DNA of 64,000 nt from Selaginella moellendorffii (lineage: Eukaryota > Plantae > Lycopodiophyta): contig NW_003314269.1 in the NCBI RefSeq assembly GCF_000143415.4, positions 2,845,060 to 2,909,059 on the forward strand, in the 5' to 3' direction. Within the stretch, counting starts at the first letter, position 1. Every line of letters begins with the position of its first letter. Positions 15,599-44,167 of this stretch are shown here, in pieces. The translations under genes were made by a program, and so were the position numbers. The notes below the pieces were generated by a model. That model worked only from the letters and a program-made list of their open reading frames with translations, was not told the origin of the DNA and did not search any database.

Positions 15599-16876
15599 AT
15601 GGTGGAGGAGCTCGATTTCGATGTGGAGATCGGCAGCGCGGGCATTGGCGATGGCGGCGACGAGGATTTCGATGAGGAGTACGAGGATCTCTACGACGAT
15701 GTAAATGTAGGGTTCTTTCCCCAGGAAGCGGCTGCTCCTCCAGCTCGTCCAGCGCCATCGCCAGTAGCGGCAGCGCCAGGGAAGGGATCTGGTGAGCTCT
15801 ACCCCAGGGACGAGCAGGACAGCACGACAGCGCCGGCTAGGGTTAATGCGGCGCCAGAGAGTTTCAGCAAGGATGAAGATCCTCCCATTGCCACTGGCGA
15901 GAGCGCTGCTCCAGCAGCTCCTATCGATTCTTCGCCAGGGATTCTCGCTCGGCCGCCACCGCAGCAGCAGCAGTTCGTGGATGCGAATGCGAAGGCGGGG
16001 ATTTTCATCTCGGAGCTTCACTGGTGGACGACAGACGCCGATCTGGAGGCCGCGCTGGCGGATTTCGGGCGGCACAAGGGGCTGAAATTCTCCGAGGAGA
16101 GAGCCAGTGGCAAATCCAAGGGCTACTGCCAGGTTGAGTTCTACGATCCACTCGCGGCCCAGCAATGCAAGGAGCAGCTCAATGGCAGGATTTTCAATGG
16201 GCGCCCTTGCGTCGTCCAGTACGCCACGCCCCAAGTCCTCAAGCAAGTAAACGCGAAGAGCCAGAGCCAGAGCCAGCCATCGCAAGCAGCGCAAGCTCCA
16301 CAGCAAGGCCAGGCCGGGAAGAAAAATAGCGGCGGTGGCGGGGGTGGTGGCGGCGGTGGTAGAGGACGAGGACGCGGCCGTGGTGGTGGTGGTAACAATG
16401 GACAACTTCCGCTAGGAGGAATGGGGCTGTTTGGGGATCCGGGCTTTGTTCCTCCGATGAGACCGGGCATTTTCGGGATGGGATTCATGCCGCGGGGTCC
16501 TGCGTATCCGATGCACTACCCGGGCGTGCCGCCACCTCACGTAAATCCAGCGTTCTTCGGACGGGGCGGAGCAAACGGGCACGCGATCGCGAATGCTGGA
16601 GGGTGGAGTAGCGGCGGATGGGAGGAGAGCGAGCGGGGCGGCGGTGGCGGGTATGGTTTCGAGGACGAGGATGGCCGAGGTAGCGGCAAAGAAACCGGCA
16701 AAGCTTCGCGGGATCACAAGGATGGAAAGGATTTGGATCGCGAGAAAGAGAGGCAGCAACACAGGGACAGTAGAGATCGGGATCACAACGCTAACAAGCC
16801 CAGCAGCCATAGCTACAAATCGAGAGAGAAAGGAGAGGATTATAGCGACGAGTATAGCAAGAGGCGGCGCCACTGA
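15599..16876 (+). CDS. CPSF6: Cleavage factor Im large subunit (CFIm68/CPSF6-like) RRM protein
   Basis: DLYDDV N-terminal motif; RRM IFISELHWWTTDADLE...ERASGKSKGYCQVEF; PPHVNPAFFGRG; RD/RE-rich tail. Confidence 0.85.
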   Translation: MVEELDFDVEIGSAGIGDGGDEDFDEEYEDLYDDVNVGFFPQEAAAPPARPAPSPVAAAPGKGSGELYPRDEQDSTTAPARVNAAPESFSKDEDPPIATGESAAPAAPIDSSPGILARPPPQQQQFVDANAKAGIFISELHWWTTDADLEAALADFGRHKGLKFSEERASGKSKGYCQVEFYDPLAAQQCKEQLNGRIFNGRPCVVQYATPQVLKQVNAKSQSQSQPSQAAQAPQQGQAGKKNSGGGGGGGGGGRGRGRGRGGGGNNGQLPLGGMGLFGDPGFVPPMRPGIFGMGFMPRGPAYPMHYPGVPPPHVNPAFFGRGGANGHAIANAGGWSSGGWEESERGGGGGYGFEDEDGRGSGKETGKASRDHKDGKDLDREKERQQHRDSRDRDHNANKPSSHSYKSREKGEDYSDEYSKRRRH

Positions 16877-16993: not shown

Positions 16994-19134
16994 ATGGCGG
17001 TCCCTCGCCTCCTCGACACTTGTTGCGCGGCCATATCCAATGGCGTCTTCCAGCGCTCGTTCTTCCGTCGATCGAGAGGGATAGCGGCTTGTTCGTTTCG
17101 ATCCAGGTATTCCTTGGCAGCTGCTGCTGCTGCTGCCGCGGCGCCGAAATCCAAGAAGCAGCGCAATGTCCCGACGCTGCTGGAGATCGAGGCGCTGGCG
17201 GTGGAGGAATCGCAATCGCCGCGGCTGGAGAGGGGCCAGGTCGTGAATGCGCTGCTGTCGCTGCTGGAGCGCCATGGGATTCCTTCACGGTACGCTTTCG
17301 AAGTTCTCAGGGAGGCCGACGAGATTATCAGCGCCTTGCAAGAGGAGCAAGAAGATGCTACATTTTCCGATACGCACGATCCGCGCAGCAATCTTTCTTC
17401 CCAGGCACCGAGAGCTGCCGAGAGCGGCGTCTCGACAGTGCTGGCCCGTGCCGAAGAGAAGAATTTCTCCAAGCTGGTTTCCTACTTCCACAAGCTCGGG
17501 ATCAAAGCCTCGGATGTGTCAAAGGTGATGCCGTTCGTTCTAGAGTCGGGCGTAGAGCCAGTGGACACAATGGTGGAGTTTCTCCAAGGCGTTGGTGTCA
17601 AGTACAACTCCTTGGCTAGAGTGATCGTGGCGTGGCCCAAGATTTTCCACCATCACCCCAACGATCTAGCTCCCGCTGTCGTGGTACTCAACCGGCTCGG
17701 TTTCACGTCCATGAGCCTCTCGAGTTTGGTGGCGAGAGCTCCACTGCTGCTCTCGAGAAGCGCGGATGATCTCACTCAGTGTGTCACGTACATGGCGAGC
17801 ATTGGCTTGTCTCGCAGAGACACGGAAAGGCTTGTCAACCGGTATCCATCGGTTCTCATGGATGGGGAAAAGCTGAAAAGCCTGGTAACTTATCTGGAAA
17901 GCATTGGAGTTCGGCAAACCAGCATCGGACGGATCATCTCCAGAAAGCTTTCTCTTCTCGAGACGGACGCTCAGGGTCTGGCTCCCTTGGTAGATTTTCT
18001 AAAGAGCACCAACGCCACCGCCGACGACATCAATAAGATTCTCTATCTGTATCCAGGACTTCTGGGATACAGTCCTGAGGTGAGAAGCTCTGCCATTTTC
18101 TCTAGTAATCACCCTGAGCTTGATTTGCAGGCCCTTCGCCGAGTAGTGTCTTTTCTCGAGAATCTGGGCGTGCCACCATTGCTGATGGGAAAACTGCTTA
18201 GAAGACACCCGCGACTGCTGGCGATCAAGCATGACATGCAGGAGAGAGTTGAGTTTCTCTTCAGCTTGGGCCTAGTGCGCAAGGACCTTGGCAAAGTGAG
18301 TATAGTTTCTTTAAAGTATCTGTGCTGTTGAAAGTATTGCAGGTTTTGTTTAAAGCTCCGCAGCTGATGACTCTTCACATCAAGGACAACATGATACCGA
18401 CCGTGCGCTTCCTTGCGAGTCTCGGTGTTGATGTCGTCAGGGTCTGTGCAGTCATTCGTTCACGTTTCCATCTACCTAACGGATTTTCAACTTTCGCAAG
18501 GTTATGCGGTCCAAGCCAATGGTTCTGGGCTTGAACGTGGAAACCAAGATCCGTCCGAACCTCAAGTTCATACAAAATCTAGGCATTGACTCGGAAAGCA
18601 TCGGCAAGTAAGCAGCACTTTGCCGGGCCCTTGCTTGACTTCTGAATAACTTCCCTCTCGTGATGACAAGGGTGCTCAGCCTCATTTGCTGACTTTGAGC
18701 ATCGACAAGAAACTACAGCCAACTGTGTGCTTCTTCCTGGATTTCAAAGGCAAGTGTTACAACAAAATCTCTTCGTTCTTTATTTGTGTGGTCCTGCATG
18801 CAGGAAGGAAATTTCCGACATGGTGAAAAGATTGCCATCGCTCCTGGGCTTCAGCATCGCGACGCTTCTGGTTCCCAAGTACGAGTTTTTCATGAAAGCC
18901 ATGCATCGGCCTCAGCGCGAGCTCGTTCATTTCCCTCAGTTCTTCAGCTACAGCCTCAACAAGAGGCTCATACGCCGGTTCGAGCGCCTGGGGAAACACT
19001 TTCACGAACAAGGTCTGAGTAGCGTGTATAGCTGTAGTGACTTGGTTTTCGAGGAGAGGTTCGCAGAATTTTTGGAAAAGTCCAAGTCGCCCGAGAGCAA
19101 CACCAGGGATTGTAAGCAGCAAGGAGCCATGTGA
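16994..19134 (+). CDS. mTERF family protein, organelle-targeted, multi-exon
   Basis: Repeated mTERF motifs (VEFLQGVGV, YPGLLGYS, PQLM, PTVRFLASLG) and C-terminal PQFFSYSLNKRLIRR; basic N-terminal targeting peptide. Confidence 0.87.
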
Positions 19135-27859: not shown

Positions 27860-30800
27860 TTGCATTGTCTATATCTCACTTTCCCTATAGCATTTGGTTT
27901 GTATGAGTTATTGGTGATGTCATTTGGTTTGAATAATACTCTAACGACTTTTTAATTGATGATGGATGAAATTCTTTGCAATATACCGAATGTGACTACT
28001 GACTTCATTAATGATGTCTTAACCCATTCGAAGGGGATATGGGAGGAGTATATACATAATATTCATAAGGTGTTGGATCCGTTACAAGAAGTTAGTTTAA
28101 AGCTAAAGTGGTCAAAGCATGTGTTTGGATCTAAAGACGTGACTTTATCTTGGGTATTGCATTTCTTCAAATTGATCTAGAAGTGTTGTACATCATTCAC
28201 ACACTTTGGAATAAAGAACTTTAAATAACCATATCTTATGTAAAGTGCAATATCTTAGCTATTCTATTGATCATTTTTTTGATCATACTACACTATTGCG
28301 AGCATTGTTAAAGTTGTCAATATCATCTTTCATTTGGTTTGTGAACTATGAATAAGCATTTATAGATCTAAAGAGCTATTAAAGACTCTTCAAGTTTTTG
28401 TATATTTTAACTACACTTGATCTTTCATTTTACATGTGGATGCTTTTGATATCAATCTTAGAAGTGTATTAATGCAAAAAGTGTGTTTAGTCACTACCAT
28501 CCCATTGCATACATCAGCCATATATTACAATTAGTGAAGGTGAATTATTCCACAACAGAGAAAGAGTATTTAATAGCAGTTTGGGGTTTTGAGAAACTTC
28601 CTACATATTTACATGGTTCTCAGACATTACTAGAAGGACTTGGTTAGTCGTACTATTTGGTTGGCTTTGAAGTTTCAAATATATCATTTCAAGGTTGTTT
28701 ATCATTTGGGATGTTTTATGGTTGATGTTAATGTTTTTTTTTAAGCTCCTTTTCCTTCTTTGCTCTTTTCTCATGTTTTTGATAAATTTTTTATTCTAGC
28801 ATCTATGGATTTTCTAAATAAGGATTTCATGCCGTCAGTAATTGTTATACTTAATGTTTAGTGTCCACAAAGTGTAAAGCAAAATTACCTTCTCTTGACA
28901 AGGTTTGTAAGAGTCAAAAAATTAAATCATGGATTTGAAGGTTTTGTAATAGGTTTGAGATTCCTACAACACTTGCTGATAATTTACCATTTCGGCATTT
29001 ACATTCTCAATATCACTTTGAAGATGATTTTCTTTATTTTGTGGGGATAGATCATAATGATCATTTATAATTAATGGTGCCTTTGATATTTATTCCATGT
29101 TTTCTCCACACCTACCATGATTCTCTTATTCTATAAAGGTATATAAGATATTGTTATATGATTGAGAAGCTGTATAGGTATTTTTATTAGTCAGAAATGC
29201 AATATAATATTATTGCATAGCTACATTTGGTGCCAAACATATAATACTCCTCTTTATGCTATAGAAGAGTGGTTAGAGTCAATTATAATTTCCTATCCAT
29301 TTGAGTTAGTGGCATTTGATTTGATAGGGCTTTTTCCATAGTTGATTATAAGTAATGAGTATATCATTATTGCTTTTAACTATTTGACTCATTGGGTGGA
29401 AGTCAGTGCTCTTGTTAGTGCATCTGTAATTGGTACTAAATACCTCTTCCTTAATCAAATGGTGTTTATAGCGCACATGGTTTTCACCCTTTATCTTACA
29501 GTGATTTACCATAGGATAATCACAAAACGGAACCTAAACCCTCCATATGCCACATGTTATATGCCACATACCACATGCCATATGTCTAGGGACAGTGGAG
29601 TGGAACCTAAGTTTCAGAGCCTTAGGCCAATGAATGAAAGAATAAAACTAAATTCCTAAGCATTGAGCCAAGGGAAGGTATTGGAGCATAGAATGACTCT
29701 CAAATATACAACTTAAAGAATGAAGGGACAGAAGCACGAAATAACATAAAAATAGTCCTAGAGCATCCAACATCCCAATGCAAAACCAACATGCAAAATA
29801 AAGCCAAACATAGTTTGGCATTATTTCAATATATTAGTGGCTTAATACGAGGATAAAGGTACTCCACCAGCTAGCATGGTGTGGAACTTAGGCTTAAACC
29901 CAAGTTACACAAGCGAGAGCTAAACTATGCCTCAGGTTGGTTAACCATGTCTAACTTACCCACTATCCTTACTATACATTTGGAACCCAAGAACATATGT
30001 TTTGAGCTTTCACCCTTAGCCACCTTTAGTATTAGTCTAGGACAAGCTTGAAATTTATTAAATATGAAATAGTGTTAGATTATGAATTTGGACACGAGAC
30101 CATCACCATTGTGTTCAAGATAATCTCTACATTCTATACATATACCAAATTAACAAATTTAGATATTTTTCATAAATAGCAATTGAGACCAAACAAAACT
30201 AACATAAAGAGTATGATAGTGAAGGTGTTTGGTAGACATGGTAAAGTATCATCTAGCAATATTGAGGGACTAGTCTTAATACACGGGGCTTCTTGTCACT
30301 AGCCACTACAAGACATAACGAGACAGAAACTCTTTACCGGGTTAAGTATGTTTAGTTAATAAATTTTATCCGTATACTCATTTGGTTTAAGTACACTTGA
30401 AATGCCCAATTAACTCCATTAGCACAAAAGGGGCTAATAAAGTGTTTAATATTACTGACCTCCTACCATCGTGGCAGTAAGGAAAGAATATCCAAAAGGA
30501 TTAGTCAGGAAATAACTTTTGATACCCAAAGTCACATTTATAACAATGTTCCAGCATTCATGTCTATAATGGATTCTTTCAGATAATGGTCATGCATTTA
30601 TGGTTGAGGCATTTCATGTTTTAACATCTTGGCTGGAGATATGCCACACTTTCACATGTGTTTATCATCCACATATAAATGGTTTGGTAGAATGGCTTGT
30701 TTAGACTTTCAAATGGATAATTGTAACACATATAAACTTTTAGAATTTGCATTGAATAGTTATTTGTTGTCTCTTCAGTGTAGTTTTTTCCACTAAAAGT

Positions 30801-30890
30801 TTTGCCCATTTCAAAGATGTACCATAACTATCAATGCATTAAATAAAATTGTCTAACCTAGCTTTAAAGGTTACAACCTTTTGTTGTATT
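27860..30890 (+). mobile_element. Degenerate Ty3/gypsy pol (RT-RNase H-integrase), interrupted by a solo LTR
   Basis: YELLVMSFGLNN...MMDEIL...FINDVL (RT); FILHVDA and NYSTTEKEYLIAVWG (RNase H); PFELVAFDLIG, NYLTHWVE and ILSDNG (integrase). Gypsy domain order, many stops. Confidence 0.8.
29467..30545. mobile_element. Old solo LTR (same family as 30900-32045)
   Basis: Ends tatagcgcacatg...cacatttataaca; flanked by GTGTT/ATGTT; colinear with 30900-32045; sits inside the integrase region. Confidence 0.8.
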
Positions 30891-30899
30891 ATTTCTAAA

Positions 30900-32045
30900 T
30901 GTAGCGCACGTGGTTTTGACCCTTTATCCTATGGTGATTTACCATAGGATAACACCACGAAGCGGAACCTAAACCCTCTTTGTGCCACGTGACGGATGCC
31001 ACGTGTCATATGCCACGTGTCCATCCCACGTGTCCATAGGAACCCGAGGTTCAGGGCCTTGGGCCACTGAACGAAGGAACGGTGCCAAACTCCCAAGCAT
31101 GGAGCCAAGGAGTGACGGAACCGAACCACGGAGCAACTCTCGAGCATAAAGCCCAAGGAGCGAAGGGACAGGAGCCCGGAGCGACTTGGAACAGTCCTGG
31201 AGCAACCAGCATCCCAATGCCAAGACCAACACGCAAAACGGAGCCAAAGGAAGTCTGGCGCTATTTCGGCATACCGGTGGCCTAACGTGAGGATATGGGT
31301 ACTCCACCAACTAGCATGGAATGGAACTTGGGCTTAGACCCAAGCCGGACGCAGAACAAGGACAGGCACGCAAGCGGGAGCTAGACTATGCCTCAGGTTG
31401 GTCGGCCATGCCCGACCTACCCACTATCCCTACTATACATTTGGAACCCCCCATAGCCCCCCCCCCTTGAGGAACACACGCTTTGGGCTTTCACCCCAAG
31501 CCTCCCTTAGTATCAGGAGTTAGTCTCTGGGACAAGCTCGAAACTTACTAAATATGGAATGTCCCTAGATTGCGAATTTGGACACGGGACGAACACCATT
31601 GTGTTCAGGACAATCTCTACATTCCGTAGATATGCCAAATGAGCAAATCTGGACACTTTCCACAAATAGCATTTGGGACCGAAATGAGACTAACACAAAG
31701 GGCATGATAGCGAGGGTGTTTGGCAGACACGGTAAGCTATCATGTAGCGATATTGAGGGACCAATCTCAATACGCGAGGGTTCTTGTCAAGCCAGTGCAA
31801 GACAGAGCAAAAGAGAACTAACAAGCCGGGCCAAGTATGCTCAGCTAAATAGACACTTAGGAATTCCTTCCTTATGCTCATCCGGCCAAGTACAGATGCA
31901 AAGTCCAGTTTACTAACACTTGAACAAGAGGGACTGATAAAGGGTCCAGCAATACCGACCTCCTGCCATCGTGGCAGTAAGGTAAGAGTGTCCGTAAGGA
32001 CTGGTCGACAGGTAACTTTCGATACCCGAAGTCACATGCGCGACA
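30900..32045. mobile_element. Young solo LTR with perfect 5-bp TSD CTAAA
   Basis: Starts TGTAGCGCACGTG and ends CACATGCGCGACA (11/13 inverted match); CTAAA at 30895-30899 and at 32046-32050. Confidence 0.9.
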
Positions 32046-33342
32046 CTAAATCATTGTCAACCATAGATTTTAAAACTTCTTCATCAAAAAGATTTTATAA
32101 GACATCTATCATCTTTTGCTGCAATGTCACTTTTATAACTTTTAATGGAGTGATATCTTCTTTTTGCTCAAACTTTATATCAATATTTAAACTTTGTTTA
32201 ATGTAAATTACCTCAAACTTACATAGTGCTTGAGGTATTGGATAGCCCAGATTAATGATACCCCATCAATGGCTATGATTGTGTTGGTATATTCACAGGT
32301 TTTTATAGTAATACTAAACTTTGCTAGATTAAGTGCTGACTTTTTTTAAGGGCTGAGATTAAAACTTGCATGTTTAAATTAAAAATCACACTTTTTAAAC
32401 AAGGTAAGATATTAAAAATTATCAAATATTACTTTTGTAATGAGTTAGTAATTAATTGCTAGATAAATAAACATATCATGTATTATCATAATTGCAATCT
32501 GTAAGTTTACAAAGGAATATAAGAAATTCATTCATATTCTGTTTATATGGTATCAATGTTGCTACATCCTACTTGGGTTGCTGTGGGTTGCCATGTTAAA
32601 GACATGGCAGTGAAGCCATTTGTCTATGGCAGTTCAATCAAATTCAAAGAGCTTGTGACCTGTTCTTGCATCTCCAGTTTTGGTGGTTTTTAAGAGTCTT
32701 TTTTATCTGAAATTTTCTTTAACCACTAGCTCTACCCTAGGAGAAATAATATCATCCTCATCTTACAAATTGATGATCCTAGCTTTTGAAGACAAGATGT
32801 TCTAGGCTGATTTAGCAAGCATATATTAGAAGTAGTAGATTTCAAAATCCATGCTACACCCTCGAACTCTAAGTTTTTGGTAACATTTTGGCACCATGAC
32901 CACATAAAACACATCTAGGTTGAAGGCACACCTAAGCACAAAGACAAAGTGTCCTTTGTGCATGCTTACGATACTAAACCTCCACTATGCTTCCCAGTTA
33001 GAATGATGATGCTTGAGATGGACTCACACCATGTGGACTTGAAAATGGCTAAAGATGCATTTAGGAAATTAGGGAAGGTGATCAAAACCAATAGAAATAT
33101 TCCTCTTGACAAATTAGAGGTTTCAGACATGTGGGCTTTTTGGGATATTTATAATGCAGCCACATAGACCTCCACCCCAACCCACCTATGGCCACCCCTC
33201 CACCTCCAATGGCTTTGGCACCAATAATGCCACCCTTGACCAAAGAACCTATGGTGACAGTGGTTAGTGCACTTGAAGACCATAAGTTGGAAATTCAAGA
33301 AGATCTTGATGTCTGTTTTTCACTGTTGGGAAGTGGGAGGAT

Positions 33343-33400
33343 GAATCACCAAAAGCCATATGTAAACATCAATCACCAAAAGCCATATGTAAACATCAAT
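33343..33400. repeat. Perfect 27-bp tandem duplication
   Basis: aatcaccaaaagccatatgtaaacatc occurs twice in tandem. Confidence 0.85.
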
Positions 33401-34068
33401 TGGCATATAGTGTTACTTCATCACCCTTAGAGAAGCCAAAGAAATGCTTGCACACAACTCTTGCTCTAATAAATGACTTCCCCGACTCAAGAAATTTATG
33501 GACTATAGTTGAAGACACCATCTCAAGGGGCAACAAATCTAGGGTAGCCAACTACAACAGCCTTCTACAAGGCAGCAGCGAGTAAGATGCATCATGGTGC
33601 ACAGAGCTGTCATAGTGAGTCAGTGATCTTCATCTCTAAGTCATCAATTACTTTTGTGATTTTTTTGATTTTTTTTTGGTATTTTTTAGGTTCAGAATTT
33701 GGCCTCAACAATATCCATAGACAATTTTGGACTAGAAAGACACTTAAAAGTCAATAATGACAAAATTTTATCCATTGTTGGACTTTGGTTCCTATACCAA
33801 ATTCCAACAACAGTTAGTTTGCGTCTAGACAATGTCTATAAATAATTTCAAACTAGAAAGACAATTGAAAGCCTCCAAAAACAAATTAGTCTTTATGTAC
33901 ATAGACTGTTCTACATGTTCATGCTTTTCTTAACTTCTGGTAGTTTTTTAAAAGCATCAATATATTTTGAATACCCTTAAAGTCTTTTTCTCATAGTAAC
34001 AATTCAATAATAGCTTAATCACTTATTTCACAAGCTACTCGACAAGTGTTAGTTGAGACTTGCTATAG

Positions 34069-35970
34069 CTAAAATTTGAAGTGTCCATGCTGCGGTGAAG
34101 TAGTGTCACCGCATTCTGTTGTCAGCAGCTTAGCACTCTCAGCTTCGGAGAACATAAAGTCTAGTTTTCTGGAAATGTCCTCCTTGATTCTCACGAACAC
34201 CTGAAAGTTTAGGAAATGAGTGAAAGAAACAATATGGAAAAGCAGCACAGCTTACGGGATTGTCGTACAGATAAACGTAGTGTCCGTCGTCTTGATCAGT
34301 AACAGCTTTCCAAAGTACCCTGTTTCCCTGCAAGCGCACACTTTTCGGTAACAGAAATTCTGGATACATCTGATCTTACCAGTTTCATCACTTGTGCAAA
34401 ATCCTCGAGCTCTTCGTCGTCCAGCTTAAGAAGATTCTCAGTGGACCAGAGATCTATCAGAGTATCCAGCTGAACAATCCGACGTCGCCTACGTAGAAAA
34501 ACCAATTTGAAACTCAAGGAAAGACATACCAAGTTCGTACCTCCTCGGATCCGGAAGAGCAACTTGATTGAGGTTGATCATTATTTCATCACGGGTTTTG
34601 GCGAGTTTCCCTTGACCCGAGAACCAGCGAAGCAGAGGCAAAAAGACCGGCCTTCTCCTCTCCGTCCCTCCATCCGTGAGCACCCATGAGCTCCGCCGCT
34701 CAGTCCCTTCAAAGAGATAAACCTGATTCTCTGGAAAAAACTTGAGCTTGGCCTTGGCCCGTCCCATGTTCCTCCGCCTCCGAAACACCCACGGCCTCAG
34801 CTTCTGATAGATCATACTGTCGAGCTTCCGAAACACCCCTCGAGCATGGCAGTACTTGAAGTAGTGCCCCCACCTCACAACTTTCGGAGCCATCCGACTT
34901 ATAAGATTGTAGCACGACCCTCCCCGTGACTGGGAGATGACCGTCTTGAGCTCGGACAAAAACAACCTGTAAGAGTTCCTGGAAGGCCTCACCTTGAGCC
35001 TCATCTCCTCGTTTTTCATGGCGTGCTGGAACTTAAATCCCAGGAACTCGAAGCCCGACCTCGAGTCCGTGATCGTGTATCTATCCGGATCGAGCTTGAT
35101 GCCAACTCCACGCAACCAATCCCGGACAAACACAGTAGCATCGAGGATGAAGGCATGAGAGCGATTGACCACGACGAACTGCTCGCAGTAGCGGACGAAG
35201 AGCGGAGCTGGATGGCCGGGATAGAACTTCGCGAACCACTCGTAGAAGGCGGTCTCCAATCCATGCATGGCGATGTTAGCCAGCAGCGGAGTGATCACTC
35301 CAAAGTCCCCAGCTCTTGGATACCCCGGATTCAGCCACCGGAGTGCCATGATCCCTCCATTCAGCCACGCCTCCACCTGTGACGCGATGATCGGCAGCGA
35401 GTTCCTCAGCTTGCTCATCACCGCGCGGTGCTCAAACTCCTGGAAAATGTAGCACGAGTGAGCGACGAGAACGTACTTCTCCTTGCCTTTGAGCGAGAGA
35501 GTGATGGCGTCCATGGCGTCTCTGTAGCTCCTGTGAGGCCTATACCCGAAGGATCCATCCTCGAACCGGGCCTCCCACTCCGGCTCCAGCGCGAGCTTGA
35601 CGAGCATCTGCTTGGCGCGATCGCGGACAACGTCCTGCAAGCATCGCCCCAGCCGGCGCCGCCGCGTGACGCAAAAGGGCAGGCCCTTGTCAGTGATGCG
35701 CAGCGTCCTGGCGAGCGCGATTCGGGCCTCGCTGGTGATGAGCGCGTTCACGCCCAGCGACGCCTCGCCCTGATTCGACTCGGTGACCCGCCGCACGGCC
35801 AGGAGGCGCGCGTGAGCGTTTTCCAGCAGCCGCGACTGGAATGCGTGTACCTTGGCGGTGTCGTTGGCCACGGCGGCGCGGTAGATCATGGATTGGAGGC
35901 GCAGCACCACGGATTTGACGGTCGACCACGGCACTCTCTCCCATGGCTCGAGCTTCACGGCAGCCTGCAT
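34069..35970 (-). CDS. Nuclear-encoded group II intron RT/maturase-like protein (RVT_N + degenerate RT + domain X), catalytically inactive; predicted exons 35970-34541, 34488-34380, 34327-34256, 34200-34069 (~580 aa)
   Basis: RVT_N motifs W..V...V.RLQ.MIY.A and ARLLAVRRVTESNQG; RT2 KLALEPEWEARFEDGSFGYRPHRS; RT4 ITPLLANIAMHGLE; RT5 RYCEQF; RT7 GFEFLGFKF; domain X RWGHYF. Three GT-AG introns of 52, 52 and 55 nt keep the frame to TAG at 34069. Confidence 0.88.
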
Positions 35971-36059
35971 TCTCCATCAAAAATCCCTAGGGAAACTTGC
36001 ATAGAACCCTAAAATTCAAACTCTCTTTAGGGCTCGATAAAGAGTTTGCTGTGGCGGGA

Positions 36060-37050
36060 ATGAAGCGCACGAGCGGCAGAACATTCTTCCGGGATTTTCT
36101 TTCCATTCCAATGAACACATCCATCTCGGCGAATCTCCCACTCCATCTCCAGCTCAAGCGATTGGATTTTGGTGGCTGGAACCAGGAGAACGATACGGGA
36201 TCCAAGTGGGGGTGGATTTCCCTCAACATTTATGGTAACAAGATCTCTAGCTCCGTGGTGGATTACCTCCCGAGCAGCTCTTCCACGTGTGGGCGGCAAC
36301 TTCAACGGGCTTGCTCCTAGTGGAGACCAGGCGAGACAAGCTGATCGTCACCAATCCCCTCACTCACCGCTGGACTCGAGTTCCACCAGGACTGGGTTGT
36401 GAGATCGAGTGCTTTTATTGCCATGTTCTAGGCGTTCCTAGACTCAAACTTTTGGGTGGTCTATGGCTCGAGTCCGCGTTTACGATTGCTGTTCGCGTCG
36501 CTGTTGTGCGGCAGTAGCAGCTGCCTGGGAGAGCTGGAGAGCTGGCCAGAATCAGATACTGGCATCGTTTCCCAAGCTTGGGTTTTGCAGCGATGGAAGC
36601 CACATTGTTTTAATTGCCAGGAGCAGCTCGGCAGGGGAGGAGTACTCACTCAAGTTTGTTAACTTCCTCAATCGGGCTGCGCGATGGAAGAGCCTGCCGC
36701 TGGGATTCATGGTCAGTGACATACCAGTCTTTTGCCTACTTCACATATTTCCCCTGTCGGGGAATCCTCCTCCCATGCATGCAAACGTGAAAAGGTGGCA
36801 GTGGAGGAGTGATGACAACCCTAGCATTTCTGCTCTTGGACAAGACGTTGGGCAATGCCGCTGAATGATCCAGGGCTGTTTCCTCAGGAGATCGTCCCAG
36901 GAGTGGTTTATTTGTGCGGGCGCCTGTGGTAGTCCTTGGTCTCCTCGAGCTGTGTGTCTACAGGATCTCAAGCCAGACATGGTCGCCACTGCTGCTGCCG
37001 GACTCCAAGTTGAAGGGCCTTATACCCTTCAAGTTCTCCTGCTCGGCTAA
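36060..37050 (+). pseudogene. F-box-associated-domain gene relic
   Basis: AATSTGLLLVETRRDKLIVTNPLTHRWTRVPP matches the GLL...L.V.NPLT..W..LPP motif of plant F-box-associated domains; the frame is broken. Confidence 0.5.
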
Positions 37051-38279
37051 GTGTCAGGTTTTGTCCACTCCATGGTGAAATATTTTTTGTTTGTTTATTG
37101 CAGAAGGATTGATGTTCGCTAACAAATTACAATTGATGACAATTGAAAGTTTCCATGTTACTAAATATTTATATATATTGTATTTTACATGAAAAGCCAT
37201 GGAGGCATGTAATGTGACAATAGGCAATGGTATTGTAGGTGGTGTTCAATCGTTCAATGATAAGACGTTGCCCTTGGAAGGCATGCAAAGGCGATTCTAG
37301 GGACATAGTTTGTGGAGGATTTCAGCAGTAGAGATAAAGGTACAAAAGAACCTCTATTATTCTAGTTTTGGTTTTTTGAAGGGATGATTTTTGAAGGTGT
37401 TGGAAGAATGTGTTTTTTCACTTCAGAGTTCTGGAATACAAGGAAGCTCTTGAGTTTATATGGTGTTTCAAGAATTTACCCAATTATCAAGTTCTCAAAT
37501 GTAGTGAGAAGAGCAATCTAGTGTTCTCACAACCAATTCTAAGCTCCATTGTAACAGGTGTGAATTTTCAATGGGGAAAAATATGTTTAAATAGTCAAAA
37601 AATATATTTGTGACAACTGTTCACCATATAAACTTTTGCAGTTCTTTAAGTAACTAGATAGTTTTGTTATAATAATCATACTTAATGTTGGGCTAGATTA
37701 GTTTTTAACACAAATTATTTTTGTTTATAAATGATTTTTCTTATTTTATTTTGTATTTTATTAGTAGTTTTTGTCACTACCCCTTTTTGGTTTACTTAAG
37801 CAAACCTGGATATACCTAAAATATGATTGAATATTCTAGGATATTTTACCATCTAATGGTTGTTATTCATTTAGATTAATCTTGTATCTATAATTTATAA
37901 ATATGTTTAAAATTTATAAACTTTCTAAATACTTTCTTAGTTTATCATACCATATATTCAAAAAAATTAATCTTATATTTATAAATTATAAACATGTTTA
38001 TAATATAAACTTCCATTTGATCAAATAGATTAATAAATAGGAATAACAATACTATCAAGCAAACCAAATATTGTTGCATACAATGCATAGCAAATTATTG
38101 ATGATGAATTCCTAATAATTTGAAAATTTTGAGTTATAGCTTCACCTTCATTTGCAAAAATCATGCAAAATGTTGAAGCAATCCAATATAACTCTTTATT
38201 CACAATTGTACCATCATCAATAATTTATAATAACTATGCCAAGAATAATATATTGTTTTATATTTAAATGCAATTTTGA

Positions 38280-41200
38280 GTGCATGGAATATGGAAATGG
38301 AGTATAGAAATATGCATATCAATTAGCCTAAAACCTTAACTTATCTAGAAGAGTGAGTGGTTTCAATTGAAACCACTCCAATAGCTATTAAAATCCCACT
38401 AGACTAATTTTAGTGTATAGCTATTAATATTAGTATATAGTATCATGACTATACATTTGGACCTCAAATCATTAAGGATGGAAAGCAGTCAAGGATATAG
38501 AAGAACATCAGAAGGAACATCAAGAGGAGGCATTGATGGATTTGATAGTGGTATTACTTATTTATAATCATTTTGTACAAAGTGTTTCAGCCATTATAGT
38601 AAGGAGCTCTTTAGACAAACCATATACCATAAGATTGAGAAAATAAACTAACACCAAGTCATCCACTTTGTGCTTTATAAGTGGATGAAGATGAGAGTTG
38701 GTACCATCATTATTGTCCCACTTATACCCAAATGTTTGGCAAACTATGTTTGAACAAGTGGAAGAATGCTTGTCAAATGTTGATTTTAGGATCTAGCATC
38801 GATAGCTCATGGTGATTGTGAAACTAAACTCAACTTTGTTAATAGTATTGGATTATGACTATATAAAAATTTATATAGTAACACACGAATAAAATTCTAT
38901 ACTTCTATGACATACACATATCGAAGAGATAGCAAATAACCATCTTAATCTGAATATTGAAAGTTCATATACTTCACAATCATTCCTTTAAAGGTTTGAG
39001 CGAGCCATTCCACCAAACCATGTGAAAATGTGGCATATCCCTAGTCAAGATGTTAAAACATGAAATGCTTTGACTATAAATACAGAACCATTATCTAAAA
39101 GAATTTGTTATAGACATATTTACTAGAACACTATTTCATTGAGAATGTAAATGCTGAAATGATAAGTCATCAGTAAGTGATGCAAGATTTTTTGACCTAT
39201 CATAAAGCCTTCGAATCTATAGCTTAACCTTTTGAGCTTCACGAACTTCATCAACAAAAAGTAAATTTTATGTTGCACCTTATGGACATTAAACATTAAA
39301 TATAGCAACTGTTGATGGTATGGAATCCTCGTCTAAAAAATCCACAAATGAAAGAATAATAGACTTGTCAAAAATATGAGAAGAGAGTGAAAAAGGAAGA
39401 TGAGTTCAAAAAAAGACATCAACATCAATCATGGAACTTCCTATGTGATAAACAACCTTGAAATTATATATTTGAAGTTTCAAAGCCTATAATGTTCAAC
39501 TAATTTATGCAATAGGATAACGTTGACTAAGTACACTCGGGCTCTCTTGCATCAACACACTTCCAAAACGGATATCAGAAGCATTTATACTTAAAATGAA
39601 AGTCAAGTGTAGTTAGGAGTTATTAATAGCTCTTTAAGATACGTAAACACCCACTTATAATCTATAAACCAAATGAAAGACAATGTTGAAACCTTCAACA
39701 ATACTCACAACGGTGTAATATAATAAAAAAGATGATCAATAAAATGGCCAAGATATTGCACCTTATCTGATAAACATTGCATATCATTCACACATTTCAA
39801 AGTAAGGAAATTAAAAATAACCACTAGTTTGTCATGATCAACTTGCAAACCTCATGAGAAATATAGTACTCAAGATAAGTTATATCTTTAGACTTAAATA
39901 CACATTTCAACCACTTCAGCTTTAAACCAACTTCCCACAATCAATTTAACACTCAATGAAATCAATAGTCAAATTTGGCATATCGCAAAAAACTTCGTCT
40001 ATCATCTGTAGGAAAGTAGTTGAAGCATTTTTCAAATCAAACAACACCACTAAGAACTCATACAAATTAAATAGTGTATTAACTATTGGCACTTACCAAT
40101 ATCCAAAAGTAAGACCTAACTTAGAAAACTAATGACTTCTCCCCAGAAGATCTAGGAGATCAATAGTATAAGGAAGAGGGTACACATCCAGATGAATCAC
40201 TTCATTTAACAAACAATAATTGATGCAAAAATGAGTATTCTTATTAGGTTTTGTCATAGAATGAGGTAATAACTCCATGACTTTCGAATAACACTCTTTT
40301 CTAACATCTCTTTGATGTTTATATGTAAAATTTTGATCTCCTTTAATGACTGATGATGAATATAAACCTTCATTGAATAAGCATCCCTAGTTAGAACCAA
40401 ATGACGTGTTGCAATCTTGGTCTCAGAGGACAAGCTAAATTCAAAGAGATCAAAATACTACTTCATAAGCCAATCAATTACTAAAGGAACAAAATAGAAA
40501 CATAGGAGTAAATAATGAGGAGACAAAAGTGATGGAAGTAAATGTAAAACCAAATGGACAAAGAGAAACAAAAGTGATATGAATGTAATAAAAATAAAAA
40601 AGTATGAGAAAAAGGCTTAAGTCATATTTGGTATGATTACACTGTAACCAATCCATACTAAGAATGAGGTCAAAAGCTTAACTCAACACGACCCACAACA
40701 ACTGAAGTGATTGCCCCAAGTTTGCCTCATCCTATGCATATGCATGTGTATGGTTGTTGCCATAAAGAATAAAAGCTAGCTTTACCGTACGATATAAATA
40801 TAGACGGCAATATGTGGCAATAGGCCAAGCAATAAAAAATAAATTTAAGCCTGTATCAACTAATATAAAGAGAATAATAGGAAACCTTACATTATAAAAA
40901 TGACTTTGGAAAATAAAAATTAGATAAACTGATGTTGAGTGAACCCCTTGATAATACTTTTGAAAGAAAAATAGAGGGATCATCAACTTATTCACGTAAA
41001 GACTATTCACTACTCACATGACTCATTTCCCAAAAGCATCTTGGTGTTTAAACTTTCCACTACAACAACACTAATAAAACGTTGTTGATGCCAAGATCTC
41101 CATCTAATAAATGGAAAATGTCAATCTGAAAAACACCAATAACACCAATAAATATGGCCAACTTCATCACACAGTCAATAACAAACATCATAGCCATGAT

Positions 41201-42562: not shown

Positions 42563-44167
42563 TCACTCCGAGGGTGGCATGGCGCACGTCTTGCCGTGAT
42601 GAACAGTGTAGAGGAACGGATCGTCACAGTCGTTGTTGATGCCAAAAGCGGCCGAGAGCTGGAGCAGCTCATCGACGATCTTCTGCGGAAGGCTGGGAGT
42701 CCGGGAAAGAATGAACATCCCCTGGTGGATCGCTCCCGTCACCTTGTTCTGCGAGCACGAGTAAACCAGCGAGGCCCGGTATCCCTGCATTGCCCGCCCT
42801 CGCAGCGATAGCACCCAGTATGGAGCCGCGGGTGGCGGCACAGGCGCGGCGATGGATGGCGCGAGCTGGAGCTTGAGCTTCCCGGGAGAGGTGACGTTCT
42901 GGATGGCAAAGCCGGCAGAGGTGTCGAAGCTCGGCGCGGTGGTGTTGGGCGATGCGGTGCTGATGGCGAGATCGATGAGGCCGCGAGCCGCCGCGATGCC
43001 TTTCAGCGTGAGACGCATCGCCAGGACCTGGGAGAGGATGGCGTCGCCGGTGGTGCTCAGGTCCGTGGAAGCCGACGTGAGCCGGACGCTCGACTCGAGG
43101 TCCCCGACGAAGAGGAGCTGCGCCGAGATGTTGACGATCTTGGGCGTGCACTGCGTCATCTTGTGGACCGACTGACGCAGCGAGTCCACCAGCGCGTTGG
43201 CTTGATCCAGGAGGCCGTCCAGAGCCTCGAGGCGGGCTCCCTGCGCCATCAGCGTCGCGTTGCGCTGCTCCGGGGTGGTGGCGTTGGCGAAGATCTCCGC
43301 CTGGCTCAGGTCGCCGTCGAGACGCTGGATGCTTTCCATGCACGGCGAGAAGAGGTCGAGCGTCGCCTCCATCTCTCCGATGGCCGAGAAGATCTGGTCT
43401 TGGAGCTCCAGCAGCTCGGCGGCGAAGTTCCCTTGCTCGACGGCCGCGGCCACGGACGCGAGCTCCACTGCTGCTCTGGTGGTGTGGCTGTCGTTGGCGA
43501 CTCGGTCGCAGATGGTTCGAGCGCCCGAGCAGGCGCTTCCAGCCGCGGCCGCAACCTGCTGGACGCCGAGCGATGTGAGCGGGCCGGCAACGTGAAGCCC
43601 GACGTTGGTGACGGACATGTTTGGCGCTTGGGCGAAGCTCGAGGTGTTGGGGACGGCGTACACGGCCTGGTTGCAGATGGTCCCGGCCTCGAGCAGCAGC
43701 TTGGAGGTGGCGGTGGCTCCAATCTCGTACCACTTGCCGGCGTAGTCCGGGAGCTGGATGTAGTCGAACGTCGGAGGATTCGGACATGTCTTGCGGAGGA
43801 CCGAGCGCGAGCAGAAGCTTGTTGGAACACGTAAAGGTGGCGGGGAGGCTGGAGATGGAGCTGGAGCTGGAACCAAAGCTTCAGTTGGAGACAAAGCTTC
43901 AGGTGGTGATGGTGATGGAGGCAGAAAGACGGGAGCTGAAAACGGCGGCGGGAGTTCTGATGGAGACGGAGACGGCGACGGCGACTGTGGGATGCCAAAG
44001 ATTTGTGGAGAAGGAACCGGGGGCTCCGCCGGAGCGCTCTCTGGAGAGACTGGCAAGACGGGCCCTTGTTCTGGACTTTCGGCCGGAGATTCTACCGGAG
44101 CTTGAGCCGTGCACGAGACGATGAGTAGCGTCGCTATCAGGAGCGCAAGAACTGCTATAGAAGCCAT
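42563..44167 (-). CDS. Secreted Pro-rich protein with a lipocalin (ApoD/TIL-like) fold split by a long helical insertion; intronless, 534 aa
   Basis: Signal peptide; SP/AP-rich stalk; YAGKWYEIG (SCR1) and CNQAVY; an Ala/Leu/Gln heptad-like middle; then GKLKL, APYWVL, SLVYSC and FILSRTPSLP (SCR3). Confidence 0.8.
   Translation of the reverse strand: MASIAVLALLIATLLIVSCTAQAPVESPAESPEQGPVLPVSPESAPAEPPVPSPQIFGIPQSPSPSPSPSELPPPFSAPVFLPPSPSPPEALSPTEALVPAPAPSPASPPPLRVPTSFCSRSVLRKTCPNPPTFDYIQLPDYAGKWYEIGATATSKLLLEAGTICNQAVYAVPNTSSFAQAPNMSVTNVGLHVAGPLTSLGVQQVAAAAGSACSGARTICDRVANDSHTTRAAVELASVAAAVEQGNFAAELLELQDQIFSAIGEMEATLDLFSPCMESIQRLDGDLSQAEIFANATTPEQRNATLMAQGARLEALDGLLDQANALVDSLRQSVHKMTQCTPKIVNISAQLLFVGDLESSVRLTSASTDLSTTGDAILSQVLAMRLTLKGIAAARGLIDLAISTASPNTTAPSFDTSAGFAIQNVTSPGKLKLQLAPSIAAPVPPPAAPYWVLSLRGRAMQGYRASLVYSCSQNKVTGAIHQGMFILSRTPSLPQKIVDELLQLSAAFGINNDCDDPFLYTVHHGKTCAMPPSE

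Follow-up and report, generated by a model that had tools for sequence, protein, structure and literature searches.

The nuclear-encoded group II intron maturases described to date have been placed with mitochondrial paralogues, including seven nuclear loci in Selaginella (PMC3927076, PMC10012718), and any other group II intron sequences of the nucleus are presumed to be inert (PMC4424553). In this study, we analysed a stretch of 64,000 nucleotides (nt) from the lycophyte Selaginella moellendorffii (contig NW_003314269.1; hereafter the window, with positions counted from its first letter) and describe on its minus strand a maturase gene (coding sequence (CDS) 35970..34069) of a different kind. 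The gene is nuclear, expressed and spliced; its product keeps the domain order of a group II intron protein, would be incapable of DNA polymerisation, and has its closest relatives among the proteins of plastid and cyanobacterial introns. Guo and Mower (2013) reportedly found seven nuclear maturase loci in Selaginella and eight maturases in total for the species. MatK clusters with the mitochondrial-type maturases, and the nuclear nMAT proteins of plants carry N-terminal targeting extensions and a domain X of the Intron_maturas2 type.

Results

An expressed and spliced nuclear gene

An earlier note on this DNA, made from its letters alone, had described positions 34069-35970 as an intact GC-rich open reading frame (ORF) amid AT-rich DNA, and this description holds, as the frame is open and its GC content is 0.52-0.65 compared with 0.23-0.37 in the flanks. 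Without splicing, the intact ORF covers 34489..35970 (minus strand, 493 amino acids). When spliced as observed in RNA, it becomes a CDS of 580 codons that ends exactly at 34069 and comprises four exons and three GT-AG introns of 52, 52 and 55 nt. Seventeen RNA-type runs from 10 studies contain 27-70% of the sampled words of 33900-36300. Four runs, each from a different study, yield one RNA contig apiece, and all four contigs skip the identical three stretches, 34489-34540, 34328-34379 and 34201-34255, all of which are bounded by GT..AG on the minus strand. The contigs of runs X1, X4 and X9 are 1840-1854 nt in length and span 33974/33997 to 35976/35987, and the contig of run X14 is shorter (1306 nt) and stops near 35540. 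In X1, an Illumina adapter follows directly beyond position 35987; the fragment end at this position is therefore genuine. The transcribed region thus extends over 33975..35987, beginning 6-17 nt 5' of the maturase ATG (contig ends 35976-35987) and closing with a 3' untranslated region (UTR) at 33975..34068.

The remaining large ORFs in the window are plant nuclear genes, encoding a leucine-rich repeat (LRR) protein, a DELLA/GRAS protein, an RRM protein, an mTERF protein and peroxin-3 (PEX3). The DELLA ORF is 97% identical to the annotated S. moellendorffii DELLA and 54% identical to that of S. kraussiana. With these neighbours, its spliceosomal introns and its spliced transcripts, the locus is a genuine expressed nuclear gene of S. 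moellendorffii, as the earlier note had proposed for its nuclear location.

Several irregularities were observed in the transcripts. An out-of-frame ATG at 35975-35977, 7 nt upstream of the maturase ATG, opens an overlapping ORF of 96 codons (35690-35980, minus strand); it may be bypassed by start-site choice or leaky scanning, and two of the four RNA contigs start downstream of it (35976). The X14 contig omits 47 nt at 35439-35485, with the non-canonical ends CC..TG and at a distance of 55 nt from the contig end; this omission would shift the frame, and its probable cause is an assembly artefact, with a deletion allele as another possibility. The X9 contig differs from the window at 33974-34041, in the 3' UTR, by 17 mismatches (21 by the piece table) and three small deletions, and shows just two differences in the CDS, both synonymous; its diverged 3' UTR suggests a second copy or haplotype with a different 3' end.

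A group II intron protein core without a reverse transcriptase active site

Residues 1 to approximately 453 of the product correspond to a group II intron protein, and this entire region lies in the intron-free coding part of exon 1 (34541..35970; codons 1-476 plus 2 nt). Pfam recognizes RVT_N, the RT0 region, at residues 10-89 (35704..35943; PF13655, 66 bits), RVT_1, a degenerate reverse transcriptase (RT) fingers and palm, at residues 115-314 (35029..35628; 30.2 bits, cut-off 29.6), and GIIM, which constitutes domain X or the thumb, at residues 337-410 (34741..34962; PF08388, 48.9 bits, cut-off 23). The NCBIfam model TIGR04416 (group_II_RT_mat) matches with an E value of 2.8e-47, far under its equivalog cut-off. 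Beyond domain X, the start of the DNA-binding (D) region occupies 34612..34740, and the homology to intron proteins ceases near residue 453 (median alignment end at residue 449). RT motifs 0-7 are present in order within RVT_N and RVT_1, followed by domain X. RT0, RT2 and domain X are the parts credited with intron RNA binding and splicing.

The catalytic motifs were called from alignments with the T.el4h RT and with 120 homologues. In RT3 (35428..35475), the catalytic Asp is replaced by His171 and the following FD reads FQ; in RT4 (35263..35313), PQGG has become GDFG; in RT5 (35179..35190), the motif that reads YADD in 98 of the 120 homologues is YCEQ; and RT1 carries an 8-residue deletion. 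With none of the three active-site carboxylates left, and with PQG and part of RT1 lost as well, these alignments show a 580-residue product that would be unable to polymerise DNA. The erosion is uneven. RVT_1 scores 30 bits compared with 140-148 in intact relatives, whereas RVT_N scores 66 compared with 90-100 and GIIM 49 compared with 56-71. Positions conserved in at least 90% of the relatives are retained at 88% in RVT_N (15 of 17), 83% in the fingers, 62% in the palm, 80% in RT6-7 and 68% in domain X.

The product of exon 1 is also predicted to retain the fold of a group II RT. Its AlphaFold (AF2) model is confident (pLDDT 79.6, pTM 0.77) and presents domain X as a confident helical bundle; confidence is low in several parts, among them the whole stretch beyond residue 453 and loops around RT0, RT1 and RT4. 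The closest structures to the model are the T.el4h RT chains 8FLI_B (E 4e-16) and 6ME0_C (E 9e-15), over approximately 468 aligned columns, followed by other group II RTs.

The apparatus of intron mobility is missing around this core. Pfam finds no HNH domain in the protein, and the HNH regions of the relatives have no match in the tail; approximately one quarter of intron proteins are without a C-terminal D/En (HNH) domain (PMC4424553). The Rfam models Intron_gpII and D1-D4 have no match in the whole window at the gathering score and none at E<=10 within 30000-40000. This result is meaningful because, in two plastid relatives (L002 and L004), the same scan does detect domain V, immediately behind the ORF. 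Nor does the ORF lie inside domain IV of a ribozyme, as its mRNA starts just before the ATG and runs into spliced exons. The domain composition, the eroded catalytic sites, the missing endonuclease and the missing intron RNA had all been noticed in the earlier note, and each was borne out, the last by the Rfam scan with its positive control.

Relatives in plastid and cyanobacterial introns

The closest relatives of the maturase are 37-40% identical to it and are mostly ORFs in introns of algal plastids, followed by cyanobacterial proteins. One of them (P0121) lies between petA/chlI and psaI in a plastid genome, another (P0005) upstream of a partial atpB ORF and thus probably in an atpB intron, two (P0002 and P0122) in plastid petB, and a further one (P0136) in a red-type plastid; the few named matches are chlorophyte chloroplast ORFs. 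Among species-representative prokaryote genomes, the relatives are overwhelmingly cyanobacterial (31-36% identity). Compared with solved proteins, the sequence matches the T.el4h RT, which belongs to the plastid/cyanobacterial class (CL-type), with an E value of 1.5e-35 over residues 9-414, and matches LtrA, of the mitochondrial type (ML-type), at 1.2e-7 over a partial alignment. The T.el4h RT is therefore the best solved relative both by sequence and by predicted fold. Domain X is of the GIIM type, and Intron_maturas2 has no Pfam match in the protein at E<=1.

A careful maximum-likelihood tree of 79 rows gives the maturase a long branch (1.45). Forty cyanobacterial rows form a clade (support 100/99) that does not include it, and its partners are plastid ORFs together with two further degenerate proteins, a grouping that is weakly supported (47/85; 72 in a quick tree). 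Its neighbourhood is unchanged when the other long branches are removed. All close relatives being plastid or cyanobacterial, these comparisons point to a CL-type lineage. This agrees with the cyanobacterial or plastid origin suggested earlier, as does the GIIM domain with the proposed distinction from nMAT1-4 and MatK; in nMATs, MatK and MatR, domain X is of the Intron_maturas2 type.

The nearest neighbour in the tree is P0124 (L003; Logan contig of SRR28411050, ORF 69-1493), which is 39% identical to the maturase and shares with it the exact run HARLLAVRRVT and the FPENQ motif. This protein is partly decayed and has no endonuclease; RT1 and PQG are deleted and YADD is kept, and no domain V was detected on its 1.7-kb contig. 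Both P0124 and P0136 were considered as orthologues and rejected, since P0124 keeps YADD and P0136 is plastid-encoded; their grouping with the maturase may reflect long-branch attraction. Intron ORFs assigned to Labilibaculum (Bacteroidota; L005) and to a Spirochaetota (L006), both from metagenome-assembled genomes, group with plastid-type proteins and not with bacteria, and their contigs may be mis-binned plastid DNA.

An SDHAF2-like exon in the tail

All three introns lie 3' of the homology to intron proteins. Intron 1 (34489..34540, 52 nt, GT..AG), whose joint was seen in four RNA runs, is followed by exon 2 (34380..34488), intron 2 (34328..34379, 52 nt, GT..AG), exon 3 (34256..34327, 24 codons), intron 3 (34201..34255, 55 nt, GT..AG) and the coding part of exon 4 (34069..34200), which holds 43 codons and the stop (34069-34071). 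The earlier note had missed that these C-terminal exons are probably not simply new. Exon 2, of 36 amino acids, matches the Pfam family Sdh5 over positions 10-43 of the 76 in the profile (E 0.0074; 16.6 bits against a cut-off of 27), its only PDB match is yeast SDHAF2 (2LM4, E 0.085), and 100 of its 100 best Atlas feature matches are Sdh5 clusters. At the RGxxE position it reads RRIVQ, which aligns to RGILE of yeast Sdh5. SDHAF2 (Sdh5, SdhE) is a mitochondrial factor that serves the flavinylation of succinate dehydrogenase. This flavinylation depends on the Gly of RGxxE, which is found mutated in human paraganglioma (PMC5773532). With RGxxE reading RRIVQ, this module would be inactive as SDHAF2.

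The other parts of the tail were less informative. No candidate relatives were found for the read-through ORF of exon 2 (88 amino acids), and NCBIfam returned nothing. Exon 3 has no Pfam match and gives weak lectin-like PDB matches alone (E 0.06-0.7), and no convincing homology of exon 4 was found in Pfam or in further homology searches. Because the introns lie outside the intron-protein part and exon 2 is Sdh5-like, host exons were probably captured, rather than introns gained. Most simply, the gene would be a chimera in which an intron-less ORF was fused to the 3' exons of a copy of an SDHAF2-like gene, from which it probably inherited its introns and its 3' end.

Signs of selection

The probability that 580 codons of this composition contain no stop is approximately 8e-11, and none of 20000 shuffles was stop-free. 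Codon usage resembles that of the host: GC at third codon positions (GC3) is 0.72 overall and up to 0.87 in the 5' part, compared with 0.63-0.83 in the neighbouring nuclear genes, and the contigs of the plastid relatives have a total GC content of 37-46%. Seven contig-level variants were found in the CDS, of which five are synonymous; the two replacements affect codons 459 and 578, outside the intron-protein core, and none of the three variants within the core changes a residue. A binomial estimate (408 synonymous and 1332 non-synonymous sites) gives P of approximately 0.01, for a small sample and with transition bias ignored. Taken together, these data make it probable that the maturase is under selection.

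Flanking DNA

The block directly upstream of the gene, at 36000-37050, is again rich in GC (0.52-0.54); it has ORFs on either strand, and Pfam finds no domain in it. RNA contigs match the block in pieces of 43-47 nt alone (36340-36386 and 36679-36721) and diverge from it in the flanks, as stray fragments of genes transcribed at other loci would, and the ORF 36463-36864 (plus strand) yields weak beta-propeller-like Atlas leads. The block was considered as a source of 5' exons or as the 5' part of the SDHAF2-like gene; this was rejected, as there is no Pfam match and the RNA contigs do not join the block to the maturase gene. The LEPEWE motif is mimicked upstream by a repeat of 25 nt (36135-36159). 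A second or partial maturase copy there was likewise rejected: when the maturase protein was compared by tblastn with 35990-37200 and the rest of the window, matches at chance level alone were obtained (E>0.3).

The AT-rich DNA 3' of the gene contains a tandem 27-nt repeat in two copies that are 96% identical (33341-33394) and a 57-nt direct repeat, 74% identical and 121 nt apart (33708-33885). A search for transposable elements and terminal repeats around the gene returned nothing convincing. Further away, the genes for the mTERF-family protein (16994-18331, plus strand) and the RRM protein (15599-16876, plus strand) adjoin each other approximately 16 kb from the maturase gene; mTERF proteins frequently have roles in organellar gene expression. 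An ORF of 534 amino acids at 42563-44167 (minus strand) has a weak match to Lipocalin_2 (E 6e-4, under the cut-off).

Discussion

We are highly confident that the locus is a real gene of CL-type ancestry. The history that best accommodates the data would begin with an intron-less ORF derived from a plastid/cyanobacterial-class intron protein, of which the ribozyme and the HNH endonuclease were lost. Three small spliced exons would then have come to follow this ORF, of which the first, from an SDHAF2/Sdh5-like host gene, has itself lost RGxxE, and the captured exons would mainly provide splicing and 3'-end signals and a helical tail. The framework of RT0, fingers and thumb (domain X), which was kept, would be maintained by selection for an RNA-binding cofactor. 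By analogy with nMAT1, nMAT2 and MatK, the likeliest substrates would be one or more organellar group II introns. No other land plant has as many mitochondrial group II introns as Selaginella, and matK has disappeared from some Selaginella plastomes (PMC6590440). On balance, the case that the protein has been selected as an RNA-binding cofactor of the maturase type, most likely for organellar group II introns, is evenly poised; the narrower claim that it is an organellar splicing factor, which the analogy suggests, falls somewhat short of that.

The compartment is the point at which the earlier note, which had proposed an organellar splicing factor, found no backing. RVT_N begins at residue 10, as it does in the intron-encoded relatives, and an in-frame stop is located three codons 5' of the ATG at 35970; the protein is thus without an added N-terminus. 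This speaks against import by the classical route. Other observations also weigh against a selected organellar cofactor. Together with the in-frame stop, transcripts that begin at 35976-35987 allow no targeting extension, and the first 12 residues include two Glu. Among the invariant positions of domain X, 32% are changed. The polymorphism test, with seven contig-level variants, is weak. The tail consists of a broken part of some other gene, which an accidental chimera would be expected to show as well. Finally, a search for orthologues among 1.84e9 cluster representatives and 5.8e9 clusters returned nothing above 40% identity, so that any long-term conservation of the gene is conjectural.

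The strongest rival explanation, which we regard as unlikely, is that the gene is a transcribed but functionless accident: a degenerate plastid or bacterial intron ORF landed beside fragments of host genes and gave rise to a chimeric transcript without a selected role. The missing orthologue, the missing annotation and the missing presequence would be expected in this case, as would a tail made of a dead SDHAF2 fragment and two mini-exons without identified homology, and the GC-rich block upstream without a recognizable gene. Moreover, the plastid relatives P0136 and P0124 have decayed RT motifs, and the RT-dead state could therefore predate the transfer. However, an accident does not readily explain why the frame of 580 codons stayed open over a branch of approximately 1.45 changes per site, why codon usage resembles that of the host, the 5' part reaching a GC3 of 0.87, why the variants are mostly synonymous, why the conserved non-catalytic positions were preferentially kept, or why expression is steady across 10 studies.

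We give marginally less weight to the possibility that the product is a selected RNA-binding protein whose place of action is not an organelle but the nucleus or cytosol, where it could chaperone RNA or bind intron-like RNAs or those of retroelements. Such a role would fit a protein without an N-terminal targeting extension, and its Arg/Lys clusters (RRRR runs; residues 102-105, 396-399 and 474-478) could serve as nuclear localisation signals; however, such clusters are a normal feature of regions X and D in intron proteins. To our knowledge, there is no nuclear-acting derivative of a group II maturase except for the very ancient Prp8, and the known nuclear-encoded maturases work in organelles (PMC3927076, PMC4424553).

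It is very improbable that the gene is an ordinary member of the plant nMAT family, that is, a nuclear maturase of mitochondrial lineage. It shares a nuclear location, a degenerate RT and the lack of an endonuclease with the type I nMATs, and several nuclear maturase loci are known in S. moellendorffii. Nevertheless, its domain X is GIIM rather than Intron_maturas2 and RVT_N is present, T.el4h is matched over the full length and LtrA in part, its nearest relatives are intron ORFs of plastids and cyanobacteria, and the published Selaginella nMATs have all been placed with mitochondrial paralogues. The plastid and cyanobacterial relatives might suggest contamination with bacterial or plastid DNA, or an insertion of organelle DNA that is of very recent date and not a gene; this is hardly credible, as the removal of three GT-AG introns in RNA contradicts it and the locus shares a contig with plant nuclear genes, has no ribozyme and is only 37-40% identical to anything known.

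Returning to a selected RNA-binding cofactor derived from a CL-type intron protein, the nuclear domestication of group II maturases is itself known; neither a CL-type source nor a fusion to SDHAF2-like exons is described in the literature that we searched. The nuclear maturases treated in reviews, namely nMAT1-4 and the moss and lycophyte paralogues, share a mitochondrial-type source. If the present gene is expressed and constrained, the taming of an intron protein into an RT-dead RNA-binding factor would have happened more than once and from different sources, and the gene appears to show a concrete route for it, by fusion to 3' exons that already belonged to a nuclear gene. In its fullest form, which we advance tentatively and regard as somewhat doubtful as a whole, the proposal is that Selaginella independently turned a CL-type intron protein into a functional RNA cofactor that acts in trans, by means of captured exons of an SDHAF2 paralogue, yielding the first nuclear maturase that is not of mitochondrial descent and one that would serve the unusual organelles of this lineage. 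MatK and the nMATs often serve as models for the origin of spliceosomal proteins such as Prp8, and a natural 'maturase-only' CL protein would be available for comparison with them. The gene also exposes an annotation gap in a reference lycophyte: the protein collection that we searched includes the annotated S. moellendorffii proteome, and the maturase is absent from it, also by exact look-up.

Comparison with known systems places the gene between several of them. nMAT1, nMAT2 and the Selaginella nMATs are similarly nuclear, free-standing and expressed, with degenerate RT motifs, a retained domain X and no endonuclease. They are distinguished by mitochondrial (ML-type) descent and import into organelles, in contrast to the CL-type affinity, the lack of an N-terminal extension and the SDHAF2-like exons of the present gene. 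The RT of T.el4h from Thermosynechococcus (PDB 6ME0/8FLI; IIB/CL-type) has the same order of RT0-RT7 followed by X; however, it is active and is encoded inside its own ribozyme, with the RT3 Asp, PQG and YADD that the Selaginella protein has lost. The ORFs of algal plastid introns (in petB, atpB and others, including P0002, P0122, P0005 and P0121) share the domain order and 37-40% identity, whereas they are organelle-encoded, AT-rich and directly followed by domain V, and mostly possess YADD and HNH. SDHAF2, Sdh5 and SdhE are comparable in exon 2 only, which aligns to the initial helices of the Sdh5 domain, covers approximately 34 of the 76 profile positions below the Pfam cut-off, carries RRIVQ in place of RGxxE and has no mitochondrial presequence attached. 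The decay of the RT with retention of domain X is the usual route from a retroelement protein to a splicing-only factor. MatK and degenerate plastid proteins such as P0136 show this same state, a decayed RT with a kept domain X, while still being plastid-encoded within an intron; the Selaginella gene combines it with a nuclear location and spliceosomal introns.

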